A DNA stretch of 62,997 nucleotides, filler included, from Polymyxa betae A26-41 (Eukaryota > Protista > Endomyxa: Phytomyxea), in NCBI GenBank assembly GCA_003693705.1. It is 5 parts of 5 records of this genome, joined end to end, with 100 filler letters (N's around TTAATTAATTAA, not from the genome) between each part and the next. Parts side by side here need not be neighbours in the genome. Positions count along the whole stretch, not along the records: positions 1 to 15,207 come from RBZT01000284.1; 4 more parts are not named here. One strand, given 5' to 3'. A program made the translations under genes and the position numbers. Position 1 is the first letter of the stretch, and every line of letters begins with the position of its first letter. Shown one piece after another: positions 1 through 14,980 of the stretch. The notes under the pieces are model-generated. The model had not been told where the DNA came from, searched no databases, and was given only the letters and a program-made list of their open reading frames with translations.

Positions 1-1124
1 TCTGTCATGTGTCATGCCCATTGAGCATGACAGTACTCGCAGCCGCCCAGCCGACCACCAGGCAGTCGTACTGGCCCTTCCTGAGGGGCTGCGCAGAGGG
101 CTGCGCCCCTGCTGACGATTCCTATAGGGGAAGAGCCCTAACTGTCATGGACTGCGCGGGTCCCCTCGTCTCCCTACTATGAATGGCGAGGAGCGGCCTC
201 CACGCAACCATTCCGATCACAATATTCAATATTGTTACACGCAAAAGAATCGAAGGTTAGATAGAAATCTGTTCACCGATCACCAACAAAACCACAAGGA
301 AAGACCGTGTCGAATGTTTGTAGCTGAAAACCTTTTGCGATTAATCGCCGAGTCTCGCAAGGTTTGGGCAAAACAAAATATGCCTTCAGGCGAACAAAAA
401 AAATTACTGGAGCGTGCGGTATTCGAAACCGCGACCTCATGCTTGCAAAGCATGCGTGATAACCAACTACACTAACGCCCCGAATTGATTGTTGGGACAT
501 AATACTGCGTACACAGGTGGGTGCGCGGCATTTCTTCTCATCTTGATAGACTCATTAACAACATTTTGACTTCTACCAAATTCAAATATTTTACAATCTG
601 AATATGCCTTTTGGTCTCTTATGTTACCTTGATTCAACTTGGTTCCGATTCTCAAACTGCTCTGAATAAAAATGACGCTGCACTCTCCAGTTCAGTTACC
701 TCCAGTTTCTGATGCGTATATTTGAATTACTGTCTCTGGATAAGGCATGACATTTGTCATCATACAATTTGTCCTTCTGAATCGGTGGCAGGAATCGCGG
801 TCTTCTAATAGTCACACCATGAAATAAGCTATAGCGATCTGCATCAGCAGGCGGGCCTTCGCTACCGCAACTTTCGACGCAAACACATCCTTGCCGAATT
901 ATTCAGATTGTGGATTGATTGCTTGGATTCGGCACCCCAGCAATGCGTCCGCAGCCAGACAGAGAAAATCCCAAATTCACAGATCTTAAAAGCCTAGAAA
1001 AATACAGCCCTTGCGCTACAGTGTGATCTGTAAAGTTCAGGTGCACGATAAACGAAATGTTCAACAATGTTTATAGGTATATAGAAGTTGATGTCATAGA
1101 AGCAGATATACGATGTTCAGCGGA

Positions 1125-1559
1125 TCAATGCTTTTTCTGGATATACAGGAAGAAGGCCGCGACAAAATAGCAGCAGTACCCGAAGATGCGGAAGACAAAT
1201 CGGACGCTTTTACTCAAGCGGCCATAGGTCTTGCCCAGAGTGACAATATAGCAGCATATTAAGCTGACCACGGCAAAAGCCAGCATGGTGCCGTTCTGAC
1301 GAATGTTAAAACCCTCTCGAATACCTGTAACAGCGAACCATATTAAGGCTGTCATCGTTACGGTGTGGTTGGTCTTTTCGCCGAATCCTTTGATAGAGGT
1401 GCTGATGGTACTGTCAGAGGAGATGGTCGGCAGCGACGGCGTGCCTGGAGGGAGCAGGTTAGCATCAGAAGAGGGCGACGCCAATCCGGGTTGAAAGGGT
1501 GGTGGCGCTATAAAGTTGGCGAGCTCAGTTGCGGGCGTGATCGGAGCATTAGTAGCCAT
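1125..1559 (-). CDS. hypothetical small membrane protein (Pro/Ser-rich N-terminus, about 3 hydrophobic helices)
   Basis: ORF from ATG (MATNAPITP) with three hydrophobic stretches (MTALIWFAVTGI, MLAFAVVSLICCYIV, FVFRIFGYCCYFVAAFFLY); no family recognised. Confidence 0.5.
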   Translation of the reverse strand: MATNAPITPATELANFIAPPPFQPGLASPSSDANLLPPGTPSLPTISSDSTISTSIKGFGEKTNHTVTMTALIWFAVTGIREGFNIRQNGTMLAFAVVSLICCYIVTLGKTYGRLSKSVRFVFRIFGYCCYFVAAFFLYIQKKH

Positions 1560-2881
1560 GATGTGATAGGAGTTGAATGAAAGGGAGGACGTGAGTGACC
1601 ACACTGCCTATGGTAACATAGGGGTGGCCGCATTGCGCATGACCATGCGCAACCCACTCTCAGAGGGTTGGTACATCTTCCTATGATGCACTTAAAGTCG
1701 GGATGGTCACGTCCGGCATGCCCGTTACCGCCCCGGAAAAAACTACAATTGACGCAGTGTTTTCGAAAAGTGCGTACGCACTTGTTTTAATTTACAAAGC
1801 TATCTAACAGCGCAATTGCTTCAAGTGACGCAGCAGCCTCTTCAGCATAGGTTGGCATCTCTGTTACAGTGAAGCCCGAAACGAAATGACGGAAGACCTT
1901 GCCCGCAAAAGTGCAATTTTTATCAGCAAGGAGTCATGGAAACAATAAACGAAAAGCTTCTATACTTATCGAATTTAGGAATCGTGAGGGACTGAGATAT
2001 TTATTTGCGAACACATTTGCTGTTAGATCTTGATTTCCCCATACAACCGAAGCAAAAATCTTAGCTTTCATTTTTGATGGGCAGACGTCCAGGGCTACTA
2101 AGGTGTTATTGCGTAAAACACACTTTTTTATTGCCGCGAAGAGGCAGCCCTGCCAGGCTGCAGCGAGCAGCAAATATGCCCGCAAATCATATCGTTAGAT
2201 GGATGCATATTCCATCAAATATTCCTGAAGGAACTCATTGGATTGACGGCAGATTGGGTATGCAGTCAACAGATATCGAGGACACCAAAAAAAGTTCCTC
2301 ATCGGATCTTAGATACAAATGTTAAATCAAGTCAATTCAAAGATTATCCAAAGAGATATCCATTCGAGAAACGAATTACAAAGCGCAAAAGCAACCCGAG
2401 AATAATCATTACAGACCTCTAGCAAATCGAGCAATTCTGACCACACCAGATGTAAAGACATTTGAAAAACTTAGGCATCGAATCTATCGTTAAATACCGA
2501 TTTTGTTTACGGAAGCGCGAAAAACTCGAACTTCTACAAATTCAATGCTCAAAACTGATCCGCTCAGTATCAAAACATCGCGTAAAATTTCAAAGCAGGA
2601 ATTTTTGCGCAAAAGCAGCAAAGGCTGCTTTGAGATTTAGCGGCAATCAACAGGGGATCTCATCAGCCCCGAGAAGGTACCGGATTCAACTCTCTGTAGG
2701 TTGAATTTGTTTTTGAAGTCTGTTTTGCCATCGCAAAACCAGAAACAGAACTAAGTAAACCTGGTGCGAAAAATTCTCAGAGTAACGTAATGGAGTTGCA
2801 GAAGTGCTCTAAAGAGTTATTATGCTAACTGGGAATTTGTATTGGTAAACCCTAAACCCTATGAGCAGTTCAAACGGGCGC

Positions 2882-5800
2882 TCAAGATGAATTCAGGACT
2901 GGAGCTGGGGATTCCCAGGTCGCGCCCGACGCCGTTGACCCGATCGATTTCAGGTCGATTTTGTTGCCCGATTGCGGATTCTGTTTCATGACGACCTCGA
3001 GTTCATCCTCGACGATCAAAATCTGCTGCTTCACCGACTGCAGGCGCTGCTTGGTCTTGCTGGCGGCCGCATTCTGCACGTTCAGGTCCCGTTGGCAGGC
3101 GTCGAATTGGACCTCGAGTTCGTCGCGTAGCTTCTGCAGCCGCGCCCTCTCACTGTTCGGATCTGCCCGCATGGCAATGACGTCGATGGAGCGACGGATC
3201 GTGGCCATAATGCCGGACGACGGTGCGTGCATGTGGCCCTGTGAGGCGGCGGCCTTCACCGCCGCGCTGTTCTGCGTATGCGAGCGCGTCTTGTTCGTCT
3301 TCTTATTGGAATCCTGACTCCAGGTAATGAACGACTGCAGCTTCAGGTAGAGCAGGACCAGCGCCGGTAACACTACGGTTCACCACATCGATCAGTAACG
3401 TAAATCGGAACGCAAGTGTAACGTAATCGCGGACGAGTAAATGCAAATGGCATTTTCGGGAATACAAATGAAGTTAACATTAATCAGTAACGTAAATCCT
3501 AACGCAAGTGTAACATAAGCGCGGACTTGTAGAAGCAAATGCAAAGTGACATTTTCGGGAACGCAAATGAAGTTAACCACATTAATCAGTAACGGAAATC
3601 ATAACGCAAGTGTAACGTAATCGCGGACGTGTAAACGCAAATGGTAACGTAATCGCGGACGTGTAAACGCAAATGGTAACGTGACATTTTCGGGAAACGC
3701 AAAATGAAATCGAAAACAGCGGTTATCTAAGCGTAACGTAAAACCTACCTGAGAGCAAGACGGCGAAAGTCGCGGCCAGTACGGTGAGCGTAACGTTAAG
3801 GACCCATTGGGCCAGCAGGCCCAGGACCAGAACGAAGACGCTGAGCAGGACAACGAAGGTGGCCAGGAAGAAGCCCTCGGCTTTGATATCCATTCGGACG
3901 TGGGTGATGGTGATGTCGTCCATCGAGAGCAGGGCGACCATCAGGTAGAGGCCGGCGACGAGGACGGCCCCCTGCAGGCCCAGTACGACCAGGAACGTGA
4001 TGATGGCCGTGCTGGACAGTTCGCACTTGTTGACGATGGCGGCGGACATGGAGATATCACCGTTGCCCCAAAGCGCCGTCACCACGACGATATCGGCGAC
4101 GATGATGGCAAGGGTGATGGCGAACAGGAGCTCGTTACGGATGCGCACCACTTTCGTCATGGAATAGTTGAAAATCTGTCGCCAACATTCAGTATGGCGG
4201 TAACGTAAAAGCCCGGAGCCATGTTCGGGAGATGATGCAGAACCACCACAACGGAACACTTTTCACGACAAACATGAAAACCTTAAAAACATTTCACCAC
4301 TTTTTTATGACATATGAGAATCTTTCAAAAAAATTTCACCACTGTTTTGAAGACATAAGACAAACTTTCAAAAAAATTTGACCACTTTTTTGATGACATG
4401 TGAGAAACTTTCACAATAATTTCACCACTGTTTTGAAGTCATAAGACAAACTTTCCAAATTCACCACCTTTTTGATGACATGATAAACTTGGAAAAAATT
4501 TCACCACTTTTTTGTCATTTTGAAGAGTTTTGAAGTCATTGACAAATGGCAACGTACCCTGTAGTAGCGCCATAATTTCATCACACTTGGGAATATTAGG
4601 AGTGAAACTGCGACCAATGAGGCTGCCAGACGACATGCGCAGATTCCAGCGGTTTGCGCCACGGCTGATAGAATCGTGAACGCATTCAGCGATATGAACC
4701 CGAGCAGAGTCAGAGCCAACAGCGTCGGTCCAGACATGATCACAATGCGCGCCTTCGATTTGACGGCAACCGCCACCAAAATCGTCACTGATGCCGTGAT
4801 TAACAAGAAACCCTAAAACCCTAACCCCAAACTTACAGTACAGCCCCATCGCAGAACTCGAACTCGCAATCAGGCCAACCTGCTGCGATTCCGATAGAAA
4901 CTCGCTCGCCGCCGGCGGTGAGAACAGATTCAGTTGCCATTGCGCACGCCCGTAGACGCCGTGCTGGCCCACGGCGGGGGCGGCGCCGTGTGCGAAGATC
5001 ATGGGCGTCACGGAGTCCGTGATTATGTGATCGGATAAATCGCCGGTCGACAGTTTCCGAGAGAAGCGGCATGTTAGGACGCCGTCGTCTCTGGTGACGG
5101 AGTAGCCGGCCATGATGCTCTGAGCGCCGCCGACGCGTTCGTCCGGGAGCGGCGCCATGACGTAATCGTATTCGTTGCCGACCTTGGAGTCCAGGACGCC
5201 CGGCGATCCATCGTCGTTGATGAAACATTGGATGACATCAGAGCCGCGCATTACGGTTCCGAATCCGACAGCCGCCCACCCGCCTAGTTGTGTTACTATT
5301 TCCGCATGCCAGATATCACCCTGTTCAAGTTTCAGATGCCAGATGCAGCTGGTAGAAAAAATATTTTCAGTACCAAGAGATTAAGTTTTGTTAATTATGT
5401 TTTGAAAATCTCAATTTGCCACCAAACATTTTCGAAAATGATTAAAAGTTCTTTTCATTTAGCAACAAAATTTTTGTAAACAGTTCTGGGAAAAAGTTCG
5501 TTTTTTCTTCAGTACCTGAATCATCCATCTCATTTGATACTCCGGAAGAGGAGAGAATGTCCGCCATGTAGAAGCCGGAAAACTGTTGAATAGCTCAAAG
5601 GACAGAGCTGGCTGATAGTGAAACAGGGCGTCCGGCATCCATTGAACGCCGGTCAAGTCCGTGATCATTTCGCAGACCGTGCGGTCTTTAATCCACTGTA
5701 GCAATTCGGCATCAAACAGTCCGGAGATTTCGAAATACAACGGGTCCGCGTCACGTAAACGCGTGAACTGCTGCGTCAACAGGAAGCTTAACGAATGAGG

Positions 5801-7828
5801 TAACGCATATTTGCCGTAGCCGACGGGTTCCATCATGGCCCCCACAATCAAGTCCAGATTGGAAACGTTACCCCCATATAAGGCCGAAGCTCGCGCAGCC
5901 GCTGCAGGGTCCGGTGTGATTTGTGCGAACGAAGTCACCGGGTTCATCCGCGGGAGTCCGGCCGCGGACATTTTCGCCCGGACTTCGTTATACGGGGGGA
6001 GGCCGCGATCCCTCCCAGCCTGAATATCAACTGCGACCAGATCGGACTTTTGATAGGGGCTGTTACGCAGCTCGGCCACCACATGTAGGTCCATAGCCGC
6101 AGCGGGCTGCAGCATGAGGCCGCGCACCACCCGATCCAGACCGTACTGGACCGGTTCGCGGCCGATGGCGTCCCGATCGTCGACGGCGTAGTATCCGGGC
6201 TTGGCTGGCGCTCGCCATTCATCCACGAGAAAGATGTTGGGAGGGGTTGCGCTACGGATGTAGGCCTCCAAGGCCGTGACGGCGGCCGGGTCCAGAACGG
6301 GGTTCAGGTCCGTCACGGCACCCAGATAGTCCGGCAGGTGATGCGAGAGCAGTTTCGGCAGGAACTCGTAGAAGACCACCTTCTGATAGACGGCGATATT
6401 GATGCGACGGGCTTCCGCGAACAGCTCCTGGTCGGTCCATGACGGGTGCTGGTCGTGCAGGCCCCGAGCCAGGCGATTATGTTCGAGGGCGAAGAGCGAA
6501 TGCAGAGACAGTACGCCCAGGCTGTCCATCGCCCGCGGATCTCCGGTCTCGAAGACATACTCGCCGGACTTTAGTGAATAGGGCGGCAGATGGTGGCCTT
6601 TGGCGGACTTCGAAATGCGAAGAGTCCCGTTGACGCCGTCACGGAGTTCGGAGAGCCGCGCGGCGCTGGATGAATACACCATGGATAGATCCAGCCAGGT
6701 CGTGGCGTCGTTACGTTTCCGTTCGTAAGCAGCCCCATCTGTAATGTTACCCGCCTCGCGAAGATACCCAATCTGGCCGTTTCCTGTCAAGGGTTTAGGG
6801 TATTAGGGTTTACATTTTTCGCTTCGGACGCTACCTTGGCATTGGGCATCAAACACCGGGTCACAGCGCGGCGCTGTCACGTTCAACCAGGCCGAACTCC
6901 GTCGCGGCAAATAGAGGTCGTGCAGGACGAACTCCGCGAAAGCCGGAACCCACTGATTAATAAAGTTGATGGTGTTGGCGGCGTAACGTTCCGGGCCGAA
7001 CAGCTCGATCGAGATTCGCCGAGCCGAGGGTCGCGTCGGTCCGGCGGCCTCCGACCGCCCGTCGTCGTACGCCTCGCGCAGCGCCACGAAGTCCAGCAGC
7101 TGCCGGGTGGAACCCCATTCGGGCTGCGCCGGGTTATGCCCGACGCCATCGATCCGGTAATGCTTGCCCACCATGATGCCGTTTGCCAGGGAACCCTTGG
7201 GACGGGAGGGTACGGCGACGCGATCCTATTAAGGAAGGCCATCGATCGCCCCAGACGGCAATCACCGACCCGGGTACGACGCTATTTATCGAACGTTATT
7301 TGTTGTAGCGTATCGTAATGGTAACTAACGGATGGTTTTTGCTCGATTTTTAGGCAGGCTCGAGTTCTGTATCAAGAATTTCGCGGCGATTCTGATGTCT
7401 TCTTCTCAGCAATCAGAAATCAATTATGAGGCACCATACAAATATTTGACAAAGATGGCAAAGAGAACAATATGAATACATAGACTGAGGTGATGAAGGG
7501 AGCTCCATTTTTTGTAACCAAAATGTTGAAGGTACGATCCAATCCAGCTCAAACTTCATCAGAAAAGTTTACAACAATCTGCAAAATCCGTCGAAACAAA
7601 AAACTCGAGTCTTCTACTCCATCTCGAATTCTTGTTGGACAATGCCAACAGGAGCAGATTATATCCCGTGGTCGAGCATTCAAGATTGCAACAATCCGAA
7701 CTATTCTCTACCTTAATGTGAAGGATTCCAAAAATGAAAACGATTCCGAGAAGAGAGGTCGCGGAAGTCCCCGAAATGATCCGCAGCCCCGGCGCGACAC
7801 TCCGCGGCCAATCAAAAAATGGAAACAT
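2882..7828 (-). CDS. peroxidase-DOMON-class C GPCR fusion protein, 7 exons
   Basis: Exons 7828-7712, 7225-6835, 6783-5516, 5320-4837, 4787-4558, 4175-3749, 3372-2882 join through GT-AG introns in one frame (3408 nt). Peroxidase motifs YRIDG..PEWGS, EFVLHDL, NDATTWLDLSMVY, GDPR, LEHNRLA, DIQAGRDRGLPPYN, QFTRLRDADPLYFE. DOMON motifs GWAAVGFG.MRGSD, CRFSRKL.TGD, IFAHG..QHG. 7tm_3-like KLWRYYRIFN..KVVRI. Exon 1 is the least certain. Confidence 0.85.
3392..3740. repeat. intronic minisatellite (GTAACGTAATCGCGGACGTGTAAACGCAAATG-type units)
   Basis: Imperfect ~32-bp units and longer higher-order repeats fill intron 3373-3748. Confidence 0.85.
4262..4530. repeat. intronic minisatellite (~40-bp AATTTCACCACTTTTTGATGACAT-type unit)
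   Basis: About 6 imperfect copies inside intron 4176-4557. Confidence 0.85.
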
Positions 7829-8426: not shown

Positions 8427-8725
8427 GTCTTCAAATTCAGTCTGTCATCAGGGGACTGCGGTCTCTGTCTTCAAATTCAGTCTGACATGGGGGCTGCGTT
8501 CTCTGTCGTAAAATTCAGTCTGTCAGGCTGCAATCTCTGTCTTCAAATTCAGTCTGCCATTAGGGGGCTGCGCTCACTGTCTTCAAAATACAGAAGTTCA
8601 AATTCAGTCTGCAATCAGGGGGCTGCGGTCTCAGCCTTCAAAAATCAAATTCAGTCTGCCATCAGATGGCTGCGCTCTCTGTCGTAATATTCAGTCTGTC
8701 TTCAGGGGAGCTGCGCTCTCTGTCG
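8427..8725. repeat. minisatellite, ~40-bp unit TCTTCAAATTCAGTCTG...GGGGCTGCG.TCTCTG
   Basis: About 7 imperfect head-to-tail copies with no unique spacers. Confidence 0.85.
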
Positions 8726-9409
8726 TCGAACAAGAGCTTATCGGTGACAATGGTCGCACGAGTAGCAGGGTCGTTGAAATTTCAGCTGCGGTTTCATAGA
8801 GCTGAATACTGAGCAGAAAACTCCCCCCGACGGTTTCCATGAATGCGCGATCTTCATATGCTTCACAACATTTGTCTCTTGACTAGAAATCTTGAACTGT
8901 CCGTGTACTTTGATGTTGCTGAATTCTGGCGACTGCAGATTCAAAGGCATCGGTGACAGGATCGTCGTACTGCCTGCTGTAAAACGTTTCGGCCGTGACT
9001 GTTGTTAGCGGTCGGAATAAGTGACCAAAATGAAGAGCGGGATAGAAGAAGAAACATCTCTTTGGAAAGAGATCTGAAATGTAAAGAAGTGAGACACTGC
9101 GCTCTCAAGATCAACTGTGTGTGACGATTTCATTGACAGCAAACCTCCCCATTTGTTTTTTAACAATCGCGCCGTTTTACCAGCAAGTTTATAGCTGGAA
9201 TGGATTCCGACAACAATACTGTCAGTCCGAACCCATCCTGGTCAATCTTTGCATAATAACGGCTTCAGGACAAAATTCGCGATCCCTCAATTATGTTGTG
9301 ACAACAAGACATGATGGTAATCGTTACGGGTACATTCAGATAAAGAGGTTTGGAGTAATACAGTTTATGGTCGTTCAGGATCCATCAGCAATGTATGAAA
9401 CCAGTTTGT

Positions 9410-9590
9410 ATAAAATCATTTTGTGAAATTTTTTGTATATCATTCTTTTCAAATTTTGTAAGGCATTATTCTGTTAAAAGTTTGTATGATATGATTCTGT
9501 CAAAAGTTTATACGATATAATTCCGTTAAAAGTTTGAAGGATATCAGAAATTCTGTTAAACGTTTATATGATACCATTCTGTTAAAGACC
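9410..9590. repeat. AT-rich minisatellite (~24-bp ATTCTGTTAAAAGTTT core)
   Basis: Repeated ATTCTGTTAAA/ATTCCGTTAAA cores. Confidence 0.7.
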
Positions 9591-11006: not shown

Positions 11007-12914
11007 CTCTTCACTATTCGGTTCTTTCCTCTATTGCACAAAAATCACAAACAGCAAATTGAAAAACGATTTTTACCAGAAATTGACATAAACTATTGTA
11101 GTCCGTAATATCGCTCACGCTATGATCCAACATATCTTTTACACTCTTGGACAGCGCTGCGGTTTCAGAGCCGCGTTTTCTCTTTCTGACGGTTGAGTGC
11201 TTCTTAGAAGCAGTCTGGATGAAATTGGTAAAAAGCAGAAGTTGGTCAAATGGAGCAAAACCTGGAAGGATTCGAGAACATGAACAGAAGACGGAGTTAA
11301 AGAGGGTTCCAAATAGAGATCTTCAGGTTGGATTTCAGATCGATTCGGCATTGCGAGGGTTTGCTGAACTGTCGGCGATTCTTGATCGAACAAATCCTAT
11401 AAATGAATGATCAGTGAAGATGAATGCGAACAGCTAAAAAGAATCATACAGCAGAATTTCGGAAACTTTCACAGAAATCCTAAAGAGAAGTTAACTGCGA
11501 TCTCAAAATGTTTCGTTGAACTTCAAACTTTGAAATTGTAAAAAAAGCCTTCTTTATAACTTCCAAATTTTGAAATTGTAAGTTTTTCTAATCTTTTGAA
11601 AACATGACATCTAATGACAGACCCAGCCTTACATCAATTTGGAAGTCCGAAATCCCCATACTGAACGAATCGTCTCTCTGAGAGCGATCATCAACTGAGT
11701 GATCGGGCTCAGACAACAACCAATAAGAATCTTGAACCGGACGGATATCCTTCTCTATCAAAATCTATTAGAAAAAGTTATCCGATTGTCCGCACAAAGA
11801 CTAGATCCAAATCACGGAGACCACCATGGGCTCATCGGCGACCGCCAGGGCGTACTGGTCCCGGAGAAGTTTCGTCAATGTCTCGACTGTGTCGGCAGCA
11901 TGAGCAGCAACCAGAATGGAAGAGAAGATGGCCGAACAAATCATGATTGTCCCCGATAACCAACAGGGCCGAATCTGATTGATCACGGAGTCCGTGCGGC
12001 GAGGAATTGTAGAGGGCTGCGCAGGGACCCCCTCCACCCAGACCAAGCGATATTGATCAAGAGAGAGGCCGCCGCTTCATTGTCTCTGCCATTCGACATC
12101 ACCAATGCCAAAACCTTTGTGATCTAAAAACCCTAAAACCCTCGCAATTGCTGTGTCCTTTCACAAAACGTTTCCGTCATTGTGCGAGTCCCGAAGCTGT
12201 GGCTCAGAGCTGCATAAATATCAGGAAAAAGTAAAGAAAATTAAAATAAAAAATAAAAAATTACATTTAAAACAAAAGGCATCGCTGACCTATGTCTTTC
12301 CAAATGCAGCAAGACGAGCCGGAGATTTGTTACTCGATGTTTTTTGCAGCATCTTGACTCTAAATTTGTTCTGGACGAGGCATATTCAAGCCCTGATAGA
12401 CTCAAAATCGCTCTTGACAAAATACGCTCACGATTTGAATATACCAAGAATAACAATGGAGCCCAATCGTCAGAGTCTGACGACGATGACGAGAGTTCGG
12501 GATCGCTTTGTCAGGCACGAACGCCGGCAAAACGGATATGCATTGCCCAGAGCAAGGCTCCGGTAACACCTGCAGCCGATATTCACGCCGCTGTTAAGTT
12601 GGATGCCCATTTCACAGCATCGATTTCGAAAAAGGCGAAAATCTCCCACCAGCAGCAGTGTCGCGAAATTCCATCGCCTTCTCCACAGACTTTGAAACCA
12701 ACTGCCCGTAACCGGCCATCTGGATCCAGCCGAATCGCTAACGCGATTAATAATCTTTCAACAGCGGTACGAGAGAGCTATCCAACTCATGACCCAGCAG
12801 TATAGCGATTGTTTAACAGATATGCAGACGGTGAAGGCATACAGCCTGATGACCGATAAGGCGAAGGTAGCAGTGTTCGTCGCGATGCCAGCCAATCGTT
12901 GTCGATTTTCCTTC

Positions 12915-13121
12915 AGGACCTGTAAGTCCTTTCGTGTAGGCGTCGGATAGAATAGTGCTATCTGCGGCAAATCCTTCCCATCCGGCCAGCACATAGGTGA
13001 ACAATAAATCAAAAGAGCAAGCAGTCAGGACGTTCTGGCTCAAGAATCCCTTCCTATTCGTATAAGGCTGTGCTTGACTGGATGGAACAAACGCTGGAAT
13101 GTGAGTCCCATCCAGGGCCAT
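12915..13121 (-). pseudogene. PIF/Harbinger DDE transposase fragment (HARBI1-like)
   Basis: ALDGTHIP...NRKGFLSQNVLTACSFDLLFTYVLAGWEG.AADSTIL is the Harbinger catalytic core; truncated on both sides. Confidence 0.9.
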
Positions 13122-13416: not shown

Positions 13417-14980
13417 GAGCCTGTTCCAAGTGAAAAAATGCGATAAAAAATGCGGTAATTAAAAAAATGCGGTCCAGGTATGACATCCGAAAAATGCTGA
13501 AAATGACTGTATATTAAATGAAGTAATAAATGAGATCGTGAGTCCTGCGAACTGCGTTGTGTGTAGTCTCTAACAATATCGTCTCCCGATGTCCCTGAAG
13601 TTTCCTCAACGGTCGACGTTGCGACGTCAGCAAGCGTTCCTGCTACTAAGAAGCGAGGCAGGCCAGCGAAGACTGAAGACAGCGCTCCGGATGTACAATG
13701 GTCAACGGAAATGGTTGAAATGATCCTGGATTTGAAGGAATTTCATCGAACTTTCTTCGTGGATTCGAAAAACAAAAATACTATTGCGAAAGGATGGAAT
13801 CGAATCACAAGTGATGTCAAATATACCTTCAATATGGACATATATGTAGACAAAGTTAAGCGGAAGTACCAGGATGTAGACCTGGGCACGGTCCGTTCCG
13901 GTCCGGTCCGGTCCGCGGTTCTCAAGTCTCGGTCCCAGGACGGTCCTATCCCTTGTGAGCGGTCCGGTCCGGTCCGGTCCAGGATTGATGACGGTCCTAT
14001 CGGTCCAGTCCTACACATTGATTCGGTCCGGTCCGGTCCAAAGACCGGTCCTGGACCGGTCTTTCACGGTCCCTTCGCAGTTCCCAGCTCCGTCAAATAA
14101 AATTTTCAAAATTGTTTTCTTCGCGTGCTGGAGACACCGGCGCACTGGCCACGGTCTCCCCTCACGAGTGATAACACAGAAAAACTGTTGAAATTGGCTT
14201 CCTGCAACCGACTCTTCGGGGGAATTTAAGAAAAATCCACTTTAATAACACACTAGGCAGGAATTGAGTATCCTTAACCATAGAAATGCAGGTAGGCGAG
14301 GGGACCCTTGAGGACCGGTCTCACGATCCAGTCCGGTCCGGTCCGGGGTCCTATTATTGGTATGCGGTTCGGTTCAGTCCGGTCCGAGAGCTATGTCGGT
14401 CCTGCACGGTCCCGCCTGAGACTTGATTGGTCCGGTCCGGTTCCGGTCCTGGGACCGGTCCTGGACCTTACCGGACCGGACCGTGCCCAGGTCTACCAGG
14501 ATGTGCAGCGGGCCTATCGACAGCTGACGAAAATCGACGAAAAATCAACTGGAAACGTAAAACTTGCCAAGAAACCGGAATACTGGGACTCACTGGTATC
14601 TCATTTCGGCGGTAATGAGGGTTCTTCCCACGACTGCCTCAACAGTGTAGCGCCTCAAGTTGGCAAGGCTGAAGACTCTGGATCACTTACTAATAATGGG
14701 TTCTAGGAAGTCGCAGGCTTTGCCCAAAAGGCGCCATCTGTACAAACAGTGGTGACCCCTCGGAGATCCATGCGTGCTGTGAGCGAACCTGACGTCTCGA
14801 TCGGCAAGGAGATCAAGGAGGGCTTGCTTGGCATGGGCCAAATGATAGCCTCAGCTTTGGCGGCTCCAAAAGAGGTATAACCGAGTAAGCTGGACAGCAT
14901 CGGAGCCTTGCTGGAGCCGCAGGCTGTACAGACTGAAGAAACGAATAATCTACTTCGTTCCTTAGTGCAGAGTGTGTAGT
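13417..14980 (+). mobile_element. Harbinger-like element remnant encoding an AT-hook/Myb-SANT (MADF-like) protein, disrupted by a MITE
   Basis: Begins TAA|GAGCCTGTTCC (PIF-like TSD/terminus); ORF KKRGRP..WSTEM..GWNRI..KVKRKYQD/VQRAY..STGN..KPEYWD becomes continuous once the MITE is removed; right end not found. Confidence 0.6.
13877..14495. mobile_element. hAT-type MITE, 619 bp
   Basis: TIRs TAGACCTGGGCACGGTCC / GGACCGTGCCCAGGTCTA; perfect 8-bp TSD CCAGGATG at 13869-13876 and 14496-14503; subterminal GGTCC arrays. Confidence 0.93.

Follow-up and report, generated by a model that had tools for sequence, protein, structure and literature searches.

Class C G-protein-coupled receptors (GPCRs) read their ligands mainly through a Venus flytrap, and we know of no GPCR that carries an extracellular haem or redox module. 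A minus-strand gene of Polymyxa betae A26-41 (assembly GCA_003693705.1) raises the question of what a receptor of this class would read if a haem peroxidase and a DOMON domain made up its ectodomain, and from what kind of protein it would have come. The gene lies at positions 2,882 to 7,828 of the window (the whole stretch of DNA analysed, 62,997 nucleotides including filler), in the part taken from record RBZT01000284.1, and encodes, in order, a leader, an An_peroxidase domain, a DOMON domain, seven helices and a coiled coil. Our analysis suggests, with about an even chance of being right, that it records an enzyme-to-sensor conversion, that is, a plasma-membrane receptor in which DOMON haem rather than peroxidase chemistry would be the input. 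The wider proposal, of a DOMON-haem redox- or gas-sensing class C GPCR that arose at least twice, in a plasmodiophorid and in an amoebozoan lineage, by a tail swap, each time with the peroxidase put out of action by a complementary route, is put forward tentatively, as possible more than as probable.

Gene structure and encoded domains

The first-pass annotation of this locus had proposed seven GT-AG exons spliced into one frame of about 1135 amino acids. Indeed, the joined coding sequence of 3408 nucleotides (nt) encodes 1135 amino acids plus a stop, with no internal stop codon, and all six introns (486, 51, 195, 49, 382 and 376 nt for introns 1 to 6) begin with GT and end with AG, in consistent phases. 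Pfam searches and fold predictions were run exon by exon, and the joined protein was used for the frame, hydropathy and residue numbering. The features on which the argument draws are as follows (TM, transmembrane helix; 7TM, the seven-helix domain; ICL and ECL, intracellular and extracellular loop).

7828-7712, minus strand: exon 1, amino acids 1-39; ATG and a moderately hydrophobic leader, in phase, with a GT donor and a hydropathy peak of 1.9
7225-6835, minus strand: exon 2, amino acids 40-170; N-terminal part of an animal-type haem peroxidase fold (PF03098, E 3.8e-10)
6834-6784, minus strand: intron 2, 51 nt; in-frame stop and telomere-like repeats, in the orientation opposite to those of intron 4
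6783-5516, minus strand: exon 3, amino acids 170-592; remainder of the peroxidase fold (PF03098, E 3e-75)
6256-6254, minus strand: Arg346, codon CGT, at the position of the proximal haem-ligand His in PDB and homolog alignments
5320-4837, minus strand: exon 4, amino acids 593-754; DOMON (PF03351, E 1e-12), linker and start of TM1
4836-4788, minus strand: intron 4, 49 nt, phase 1; between the DOMON and 7TM exons, within TM1; telomere-like TTTAGGG repeats
4787-4558, minus strand: exon 5, amino acids 754-830; end of TM1, ICL1 (RIVIMSGP), TM2, and TM3 with Cys803/805 and Lys824
4175-3749, minus strand: exon 6, amino acids 831-973; ICL2, TM4, ECL2 with Cys881, TM5, ICL3 with Asp926, TM6 and most of TM7
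3372-2882, minus strand: exon 7, amino acids 973-1135 and TGA; end of TM7 and a cytoplasmic tail with the coiled coil at about 3160-2975

The GC content at third codon positions (GC3) is 0.56-0.85 in the exons (0.72 over the whole coding sequence), against a GC content of 0.30-0.45 in the introns, and homologs align contiguously across introns 2 and 3. A nearer acceptor AG for intron 3, at 5349, was rejected as out of phase and giving 9 stops; the in-phase acceptor is at 5321. The seven helices described in the first-pass annotation were recovered as seven hydrophobic segments, with its KLWRYYRIFN motif interrupted by intron 5 (KLWRYYR|IFN), and its cytoplasmic coiled coil corresponds to a heptad pattern at amino acids ~1045-1104 of the exon 7 tail, hydrophobic at 10 of 17 a/d positions. 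The Pfam order that it anticipated (An_peroxidase, DOMON, 7tm_3) holds by exon, but with 7tm_3 below the cut-off. Its hydrophobic leader, in phase and moderately hydrophobic, is probably a signal peptide, but exon 1 has neither a Pfam match nor a homolog match and is the least supported exon of the model. On the whole, the sequence supports one polypeptide with a peroxidase, a DOMON and a class C-like 7TM, joined at predicted junctions.

The peroxidase-DOMON head and its relatives

That the first domain is an animal-type haem peroxidase resembling DUOX, as had been claimed, is borne out both by the PF03098 matches and by structure: the AlphaFold2 (AF2) model of exon 3 (pLDDT 82.5) has an intact fold of the peroxidase-cyclooxygenase superfamily, which Foldseek matched to MPO, LPO, DdPoxA and DUOX1 (E 1e-23 to 1e-20; TM-score ~0.75-0.8 for MPO, LPO and DUOX). 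Retained are the distal His141 (codon 6922-6920) and the Ca-site Asp142 in exon 2, as well as the distal Arg253 and the Ca-site T-x-W-x-D-x-S in exon 3. On the proximal side, the R-F/Y-G-H motif reads A-Y-I-R in the PDB and homolog alignments, ending in the Arg346 listed above, and the propionate-binding Arg positions are occupied by Ala343 and Ala425; the coordinated loss of the proximal His and both propionate Arg argues against a sequencing slip. In DUOX1, the peroxidase homology domain, which is without the ligand His, shows no haem (PMC7794343), and the domain described here is probably a pseudo-peroxidase too, a haem-free scaffold as in DUOX. Without these residues, sensing of H2O2 or a phenolic through peroxidase turnover, as the first-pass annotation had envisaged, is unlikely, and with the peroxidase haem site broken the DOMON becomes the stronger candidate for holding haem.

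The DOMON follows the peroxidase in exon 4, as expected. The column of Met616 (codon 5251-5249) is Met in all 20 aligned rows and that of His712 (codon 4963-4961) is His in 19 of them, and we take these two columns to be the positions that ligate haem b in cytochrome-type DOMONs (Iyer et al. 2007, cited in PMC4846438). With this putative axial-ligand pair, the domain is a probable haem-binding module.

The nearest of 1.84 billion representatives, P0001 (JGI 3300075153, a partial sequence), is ~45% identical to the protein contiguously across exons 3 and 4, keeps a His at the proximal peroxidase site and continues to the start of TM1, where the similarity stops precisely at the position of intron 4. 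Back-translated, its residues there allow for a phase-1 GTGAGT donor and, read in a different frame, for a stretch resembling TM1 (p 0.04-0.06), which is suggestive of a same-site phase-1 intron in P0001 followed by a similar helix. The next relatives are peroxidase-DOMON-b561-b5-FAD/NAD reductases with intact peroxidase motifs (RYGHS), from Sorochytrium, Cladochytrium, Synchytrium, Blastocladiella, Platysulcus and the metagenome eukaryotes P0004, P0005 and P0157. This family is widespread, with P0012, P0018, P0035, P0143, P0119 and P0214 (L012, L063) as further members, and itself represents a DUOX-like design.

A profile search led to P0165, a single open reading frame (ORF) of 1433 amino acids with An_peroxidase, DOMON and 7tm_3 (E 4e-44), and the same triple occurs in at least eight clusters comprising 11 sequences (P0165, P0207-P0213), one of which, P0210, comes from the Vexillifera abyssalis transcriptome (EukProt EP00010). 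In these Vexillifera-type proteins 7tm_3 is clear (E 1e-33 to 1e-44 in the members rescanned), the proximal His and the DOMON Met/His are kept in all eight clusters, and the distal His is absent from all six full-length proteins. A conserved extra N-terminal stretch of ~300 amino acids precedes the peroxidase in P0165 and P0207-P0211 (L050, L065, L067), and gave no Pfam match in P0165 or P0210, the two scanned. The ESM Atlas returned for P0165 a peroxidase-DOMON cluster only (0.79), and a scan of metagenome loci found only distant peroxidases, mostly at 24-34% identity, and did not recover the contig of P0001.

Descriptions of the receptor triple or of its b561-type parent family were not found in the full-text literature, a corpus that leaves subscription papers mostly outside. 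The earlier supposition of an undescribed architecture is thus upheld as regards the literature, but not as regards its uniqueness, given the triple in eight other clusters, one of them auto-named by JGI with its three domains. The receptor-type triple and the peroxidase-DOMON-b561-b5-reductase parent are apparently two undescribed families; the former, a class C-type receptor whose ectodomain derives from an enzyme and probably bears haem, is met elsewhere only in automatic annotation.

In the peroxidase tree, the gene and P0001 group with the b561-type P0004, P0005 and P0157 (support 100/99), and a union with the Vexillifera-type proteins is rejected by the approximately unbiased (AU) test (p 0.0038 and 0.0105, LG+G4); a mixture-model quick tree of the peroxidase gave the same grouping. 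The DOMON tree also separates the gene from the Vexillifera-type proteins, but there their union is not rejected (p 0.217). Two independent peroxidase-DOMON-7TM fusions, one in the plasmodiophorid and one in the amoeba lineage, are favoured by these trees, though not proven. By its sequence, the head is derived as a unit from the peroxidase-DOMON-b561-b5-FAD/NAD oxidoreductase family. The Venus flytrap is indeed replaced by An_peroxidase and DOMON, as first suggested, but these redox modules were inherited together and not module by module.

The membrane domain and what the receptor may read

Hydrophobic segments lie at residues ~740-762 (weak), 766-799, 796-826, 839-871 and 883-921, with two more within 925-989; TM1 is weak, Ser-rich and spans intron 4, and a short linker precedes the helices. 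A cytochrome b561 identity of this region, as a CYBDOM or peroxidase-DOMON-b561 oxidoreductase would have, was considered and rejected: exons 5-7 hold no b561 signal, the predicted helices of exons 5-6 contain no His (one exon 6 His sits in the ICL3 loop), and exon 7 has no Pfam match to a b5, FAD or NAD domain. Aligned with a class C profile by hhalign, exon 5 (E 0.0027, profile positions 91-156) and exon 6 (E 0.0034, profile positions 162-288) are colinear on adjacent ranges, and Cys803/805 in TM3, Lys824, Cys881 in ECL2 and Asp926 fall in order on conserved class C columns. Lys824, the K of KxxR, and Asp926 occupy the class C ionic-lock positions. The sole PDB match of exon 5 is GPR156 (E 1.1).

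Several results weigh against a signalling class C receptor. Searched against all of Pfam, exon 5 reaches 20.7 bits for 7tm_3 (E 3.7e-4, profile 25-98), short of the PF00003 gathering score of 33.5 bits, and exon 6 alone has no 7tm_3 match; the hhalign probability is ~10% for exons 5 and 6 (9.6 for exon 6), and in hmmsearch with a small family profile neither exon rose above shuffled controls. The protein has lost the conserved TM5/ICL3 Arg, the Asn that precedes the ICL3 Asp and, judged by eye, the TM7 Pro. A single-sequence AF2 model of exon 6 (pTM 0.42) matched generic helices only and was uninformative, and none of the hits that were traced to a source was identified as an ortholog from Plasmodiophora or Spongospora. 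In pairwise BLAST neither exon 5 nor exon 6 matched P0165 or the genome's other class C loci significantly, and exon 6 had no match in the ESM Atlas. Our verdict is that the 7TM is class C-derived and strongly diverged: the original class C assignment stands in that the domain is class C-like and neither cytochrome b561 nor a transporter, but not at the level of the Pfam cut-off exon-wise. With no formal class C threshold reached in this way and class C residues lost, G-protein coupling is something we infer.

With class C receptors of the GABA-B, GPR156 and GPR158 type, the protein shares seven helices, the TM3 and ECL2 cysteines, KxxR at the end of TM3 and the ICL3 Asp; its ICL1, RIVIMSGP, compares with RIVKMSSP in GPR156, and GABA-B likewise has a C-terminal coiled coil. 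It differs from them in its peroxidase and DOMON ectodomain and in a 7TM that is sub-cut-off exon-wise, and from the class C norm in the loss of the Arg, the Asn and, by eye, the Pro named above. GPR156 and GPR158 are also without a Venus flytrap (PMC11621567, PMC8611064). The b561-b5-reductase family has the same succession of An_peroxidase, DOMON with Met/His and membrane domain, but keeps both peroxidase His, whereas here the proximal one is lost and a 7TM replaces the tail. The Vexillifera-type proteins agree with this protein in the three domains and their order, and likewise have the DOMON Met/His and a peroxidase whose catalysis, from its residues, is apparently disabled as well; however, their 7tm_3 is canonical, their peroxidase keeps the proximal and loses the distal His, the reverse of the state here, no coiled coil is evident in the alignment, and the six full-length proteins have the extra N-terminal domain. 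In DUOX, too, a peroxidase fold that lacks the haem-ligand His but keeps the Ca site lies outside the cell on top of a membrane domain; DUOX is, however, an NADPH oxidase, carries EF hands and, unlike this protein, has no DOMON or 7TM.

We therefore propose the following course of events as a working model. The parent would have been a signal peptide-peroxidase-DOMON-cytochrome b561-cytochrome b5-FAD/NAD(P)H reductase in which, to go by the domain order, NAD(P)H would supply electrons to FAD, and these would travel on via b5 and b561 to reach the haem of the DOMON and the peroxidase. The extracellular peroxidase-DOMON head would have been kept and the electron-supplying tail swapped for a GABA-B/GPR156-like 7TM with a cytoplasmic coiled coil, so that the electron supply would be cut. 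The peroxidase fold may then act as a haem-free, Ca-stabilised scaffold or as a dimerisation or ligand domain, as in DUOX1, and the DOMON, holding a b-type haem through Met616/His712, would respond to the redox state outside the cell or to a small ligand of its haem. Through a short linker, the state of the DOMON would be relayed to TM1 and on to the 7TM bundle, the coiled coil would dimerise the receptor, and a G-alpha protein encoded in the genome could carry the output. As the peroxidase is disabled differently in the two receptor lineages and the DOMON ligands are kept, a sensor is the simplest reading; Met/His kept in all receptor-type DOMONs, as in the b561-coupled parents, is what would be expected if haem binding were selected.

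Other explanations accommodate parts of this evidence. The 7TM may not signal alone but serve as a membrane anchor or as an obligate heterodimer partner, GABA-B1-like through its coiled coil, and present the head to a second class C subunit or a source of electrons, for example a DOMON-ferric reductase. This would suit a 7TM that is far more diverged than that of the Vexillifera-type proteins or of the genome's other class C genes, that has lost several class C residues and has a coiled coil, in a genome with a DOMON-ferric reductase gene; yet the ionic-lock pair K824 and D926 and the TM3/ECL2 cysteines are retained, and a simple anchor has no need of seven helices, and we regard it as rather unlikely. 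The ectodomains of class C receptors generally bind ligands, which counts for another explanation, namely that an ordinary ligand (a fatty acid, a phenolic, a root-exudate sugar or a surface cue) occupies the emptied peroxidase pocket or the DOMON and that haem is uninvolved. The broken peroxidase haem site would agree with this, and DOMON domains bind sugars and small molecules too (PMC4846438). The persistence of the DOMON Met/His in every receptor-type row, as in the b561-coupled parents, speaks against it, and it seems to us unlikely.

Active turnover of H2O2 or phenolics might alternatively gate the receptor, the fold being intact, the distal His141 and Arg253 kept and the nearest relative, P0001, having a His at the proximal site. 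With Arg in place of the proximal His, Ala at both propionate positions and no distal His in six full-length Vexillifera-type proteins, however, we consider this improbable. Mis-joined neighbours or a decaying pseudogene would account for the many substituted conserved sites and the long branch, and the junctions are predicted from genomic sequence only. Against this stand the canonical, in-phase intron of 49 nt inside TM1 that connects DOMON and 7TM, the same architecture in single called proteins elsewhere and, suggestively, the fit of the P0001 tail to a same-site intron, together with 3408 nt without a stop or frameshift and a GC3 of 0.72. Such an artefact appears highly improbable.

Were the enzyme-to-sensor conversion true, with signalling through DOMON haem both here and in the Vexillifera-type proteins, it would define an input mode new to GPCRs and a clear, repeated conversion of enzyme to sensor, testable with soluble ectodomains. 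Polymyxa betae is a root parasite that transmits the rhizomania virus, and the receptor would be a candidate sensor of reactive oxygen species or exudates at the root surface. PMC9180986, citing Bi et al. 2019, implicates GPCR signalling in the related clubroot pathogen. Even if the protein does not signal, two apparently undescribed families, the receptor triple and its b561-type parent, are brought to light.

Genome context and surrounding sequence

The gene holds the only An_peroxidase match in the genome, where it is single-copy and intact. The Polymyxa betae assembly was binned from a root sample (PMC6328671). The tetranucleotide correlation of the contig is 0.80 with other loci of the genome versus 0.04-0.68 with foreign loci, and the intronic telomere-like repeat motif is shared with another contig, which lends weak support to the contig being native rather than a contaminant. 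Four other 7tm_3 matches were found in the genome, two with LamG/ephrin-like modules, one with an EGF module and the fourth adjoining a 5'-nucleotidase-like exon, and the varied non-Venus-flytrap modules on the genome's other class C genes count in favour of the receptor model. These class C-type loci include C620 (L051), C536 (L052) and C932 (L053); the LamG and ephrin-like genes form a tandem pair, and the 5'-nucleotidase exon beside one locus is a C-terminal part. The genome also has several G-alpha loci, which count for the model too, and, elsewhere, a DOMON-ferric reductase-FAD gene (C968; L006:1405-3342), a possible redox partner.

Telomere-like TTTAGGG runs lie at 4808-4828 and 6790-6812, in the two short introns, at 2846-2860, just past the stop, and at 12127-12142, and another occurs at the class C locus L053. 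Introns 5 and 6 consist mostly of minisatellites (4260-4516 and 3378-3696, with units of 43 nt and about 92-102 nt), and other tandem arrays lie at 8431-8730 and 9392-9586. The remaining features are listed below.

408-481, minus strand: tRNA-Ala(TGC) gene
1125-1604, minus strand: membrane-protein ORF downstream of the gene, with a weak DUF3522 match (E 0.006)
12813-13121 and surroundings, minus strand: DDE_Tnp_4 (PIF/Harbinger-type) transposase fragment (E 1.4e-6)
13876-14496: element resembling a miniature inverted-repeat transposable element (MITE), in which terminal inverted repeats of 34 nt (91% complementary) flank an interior of GGTCC-rich repeats

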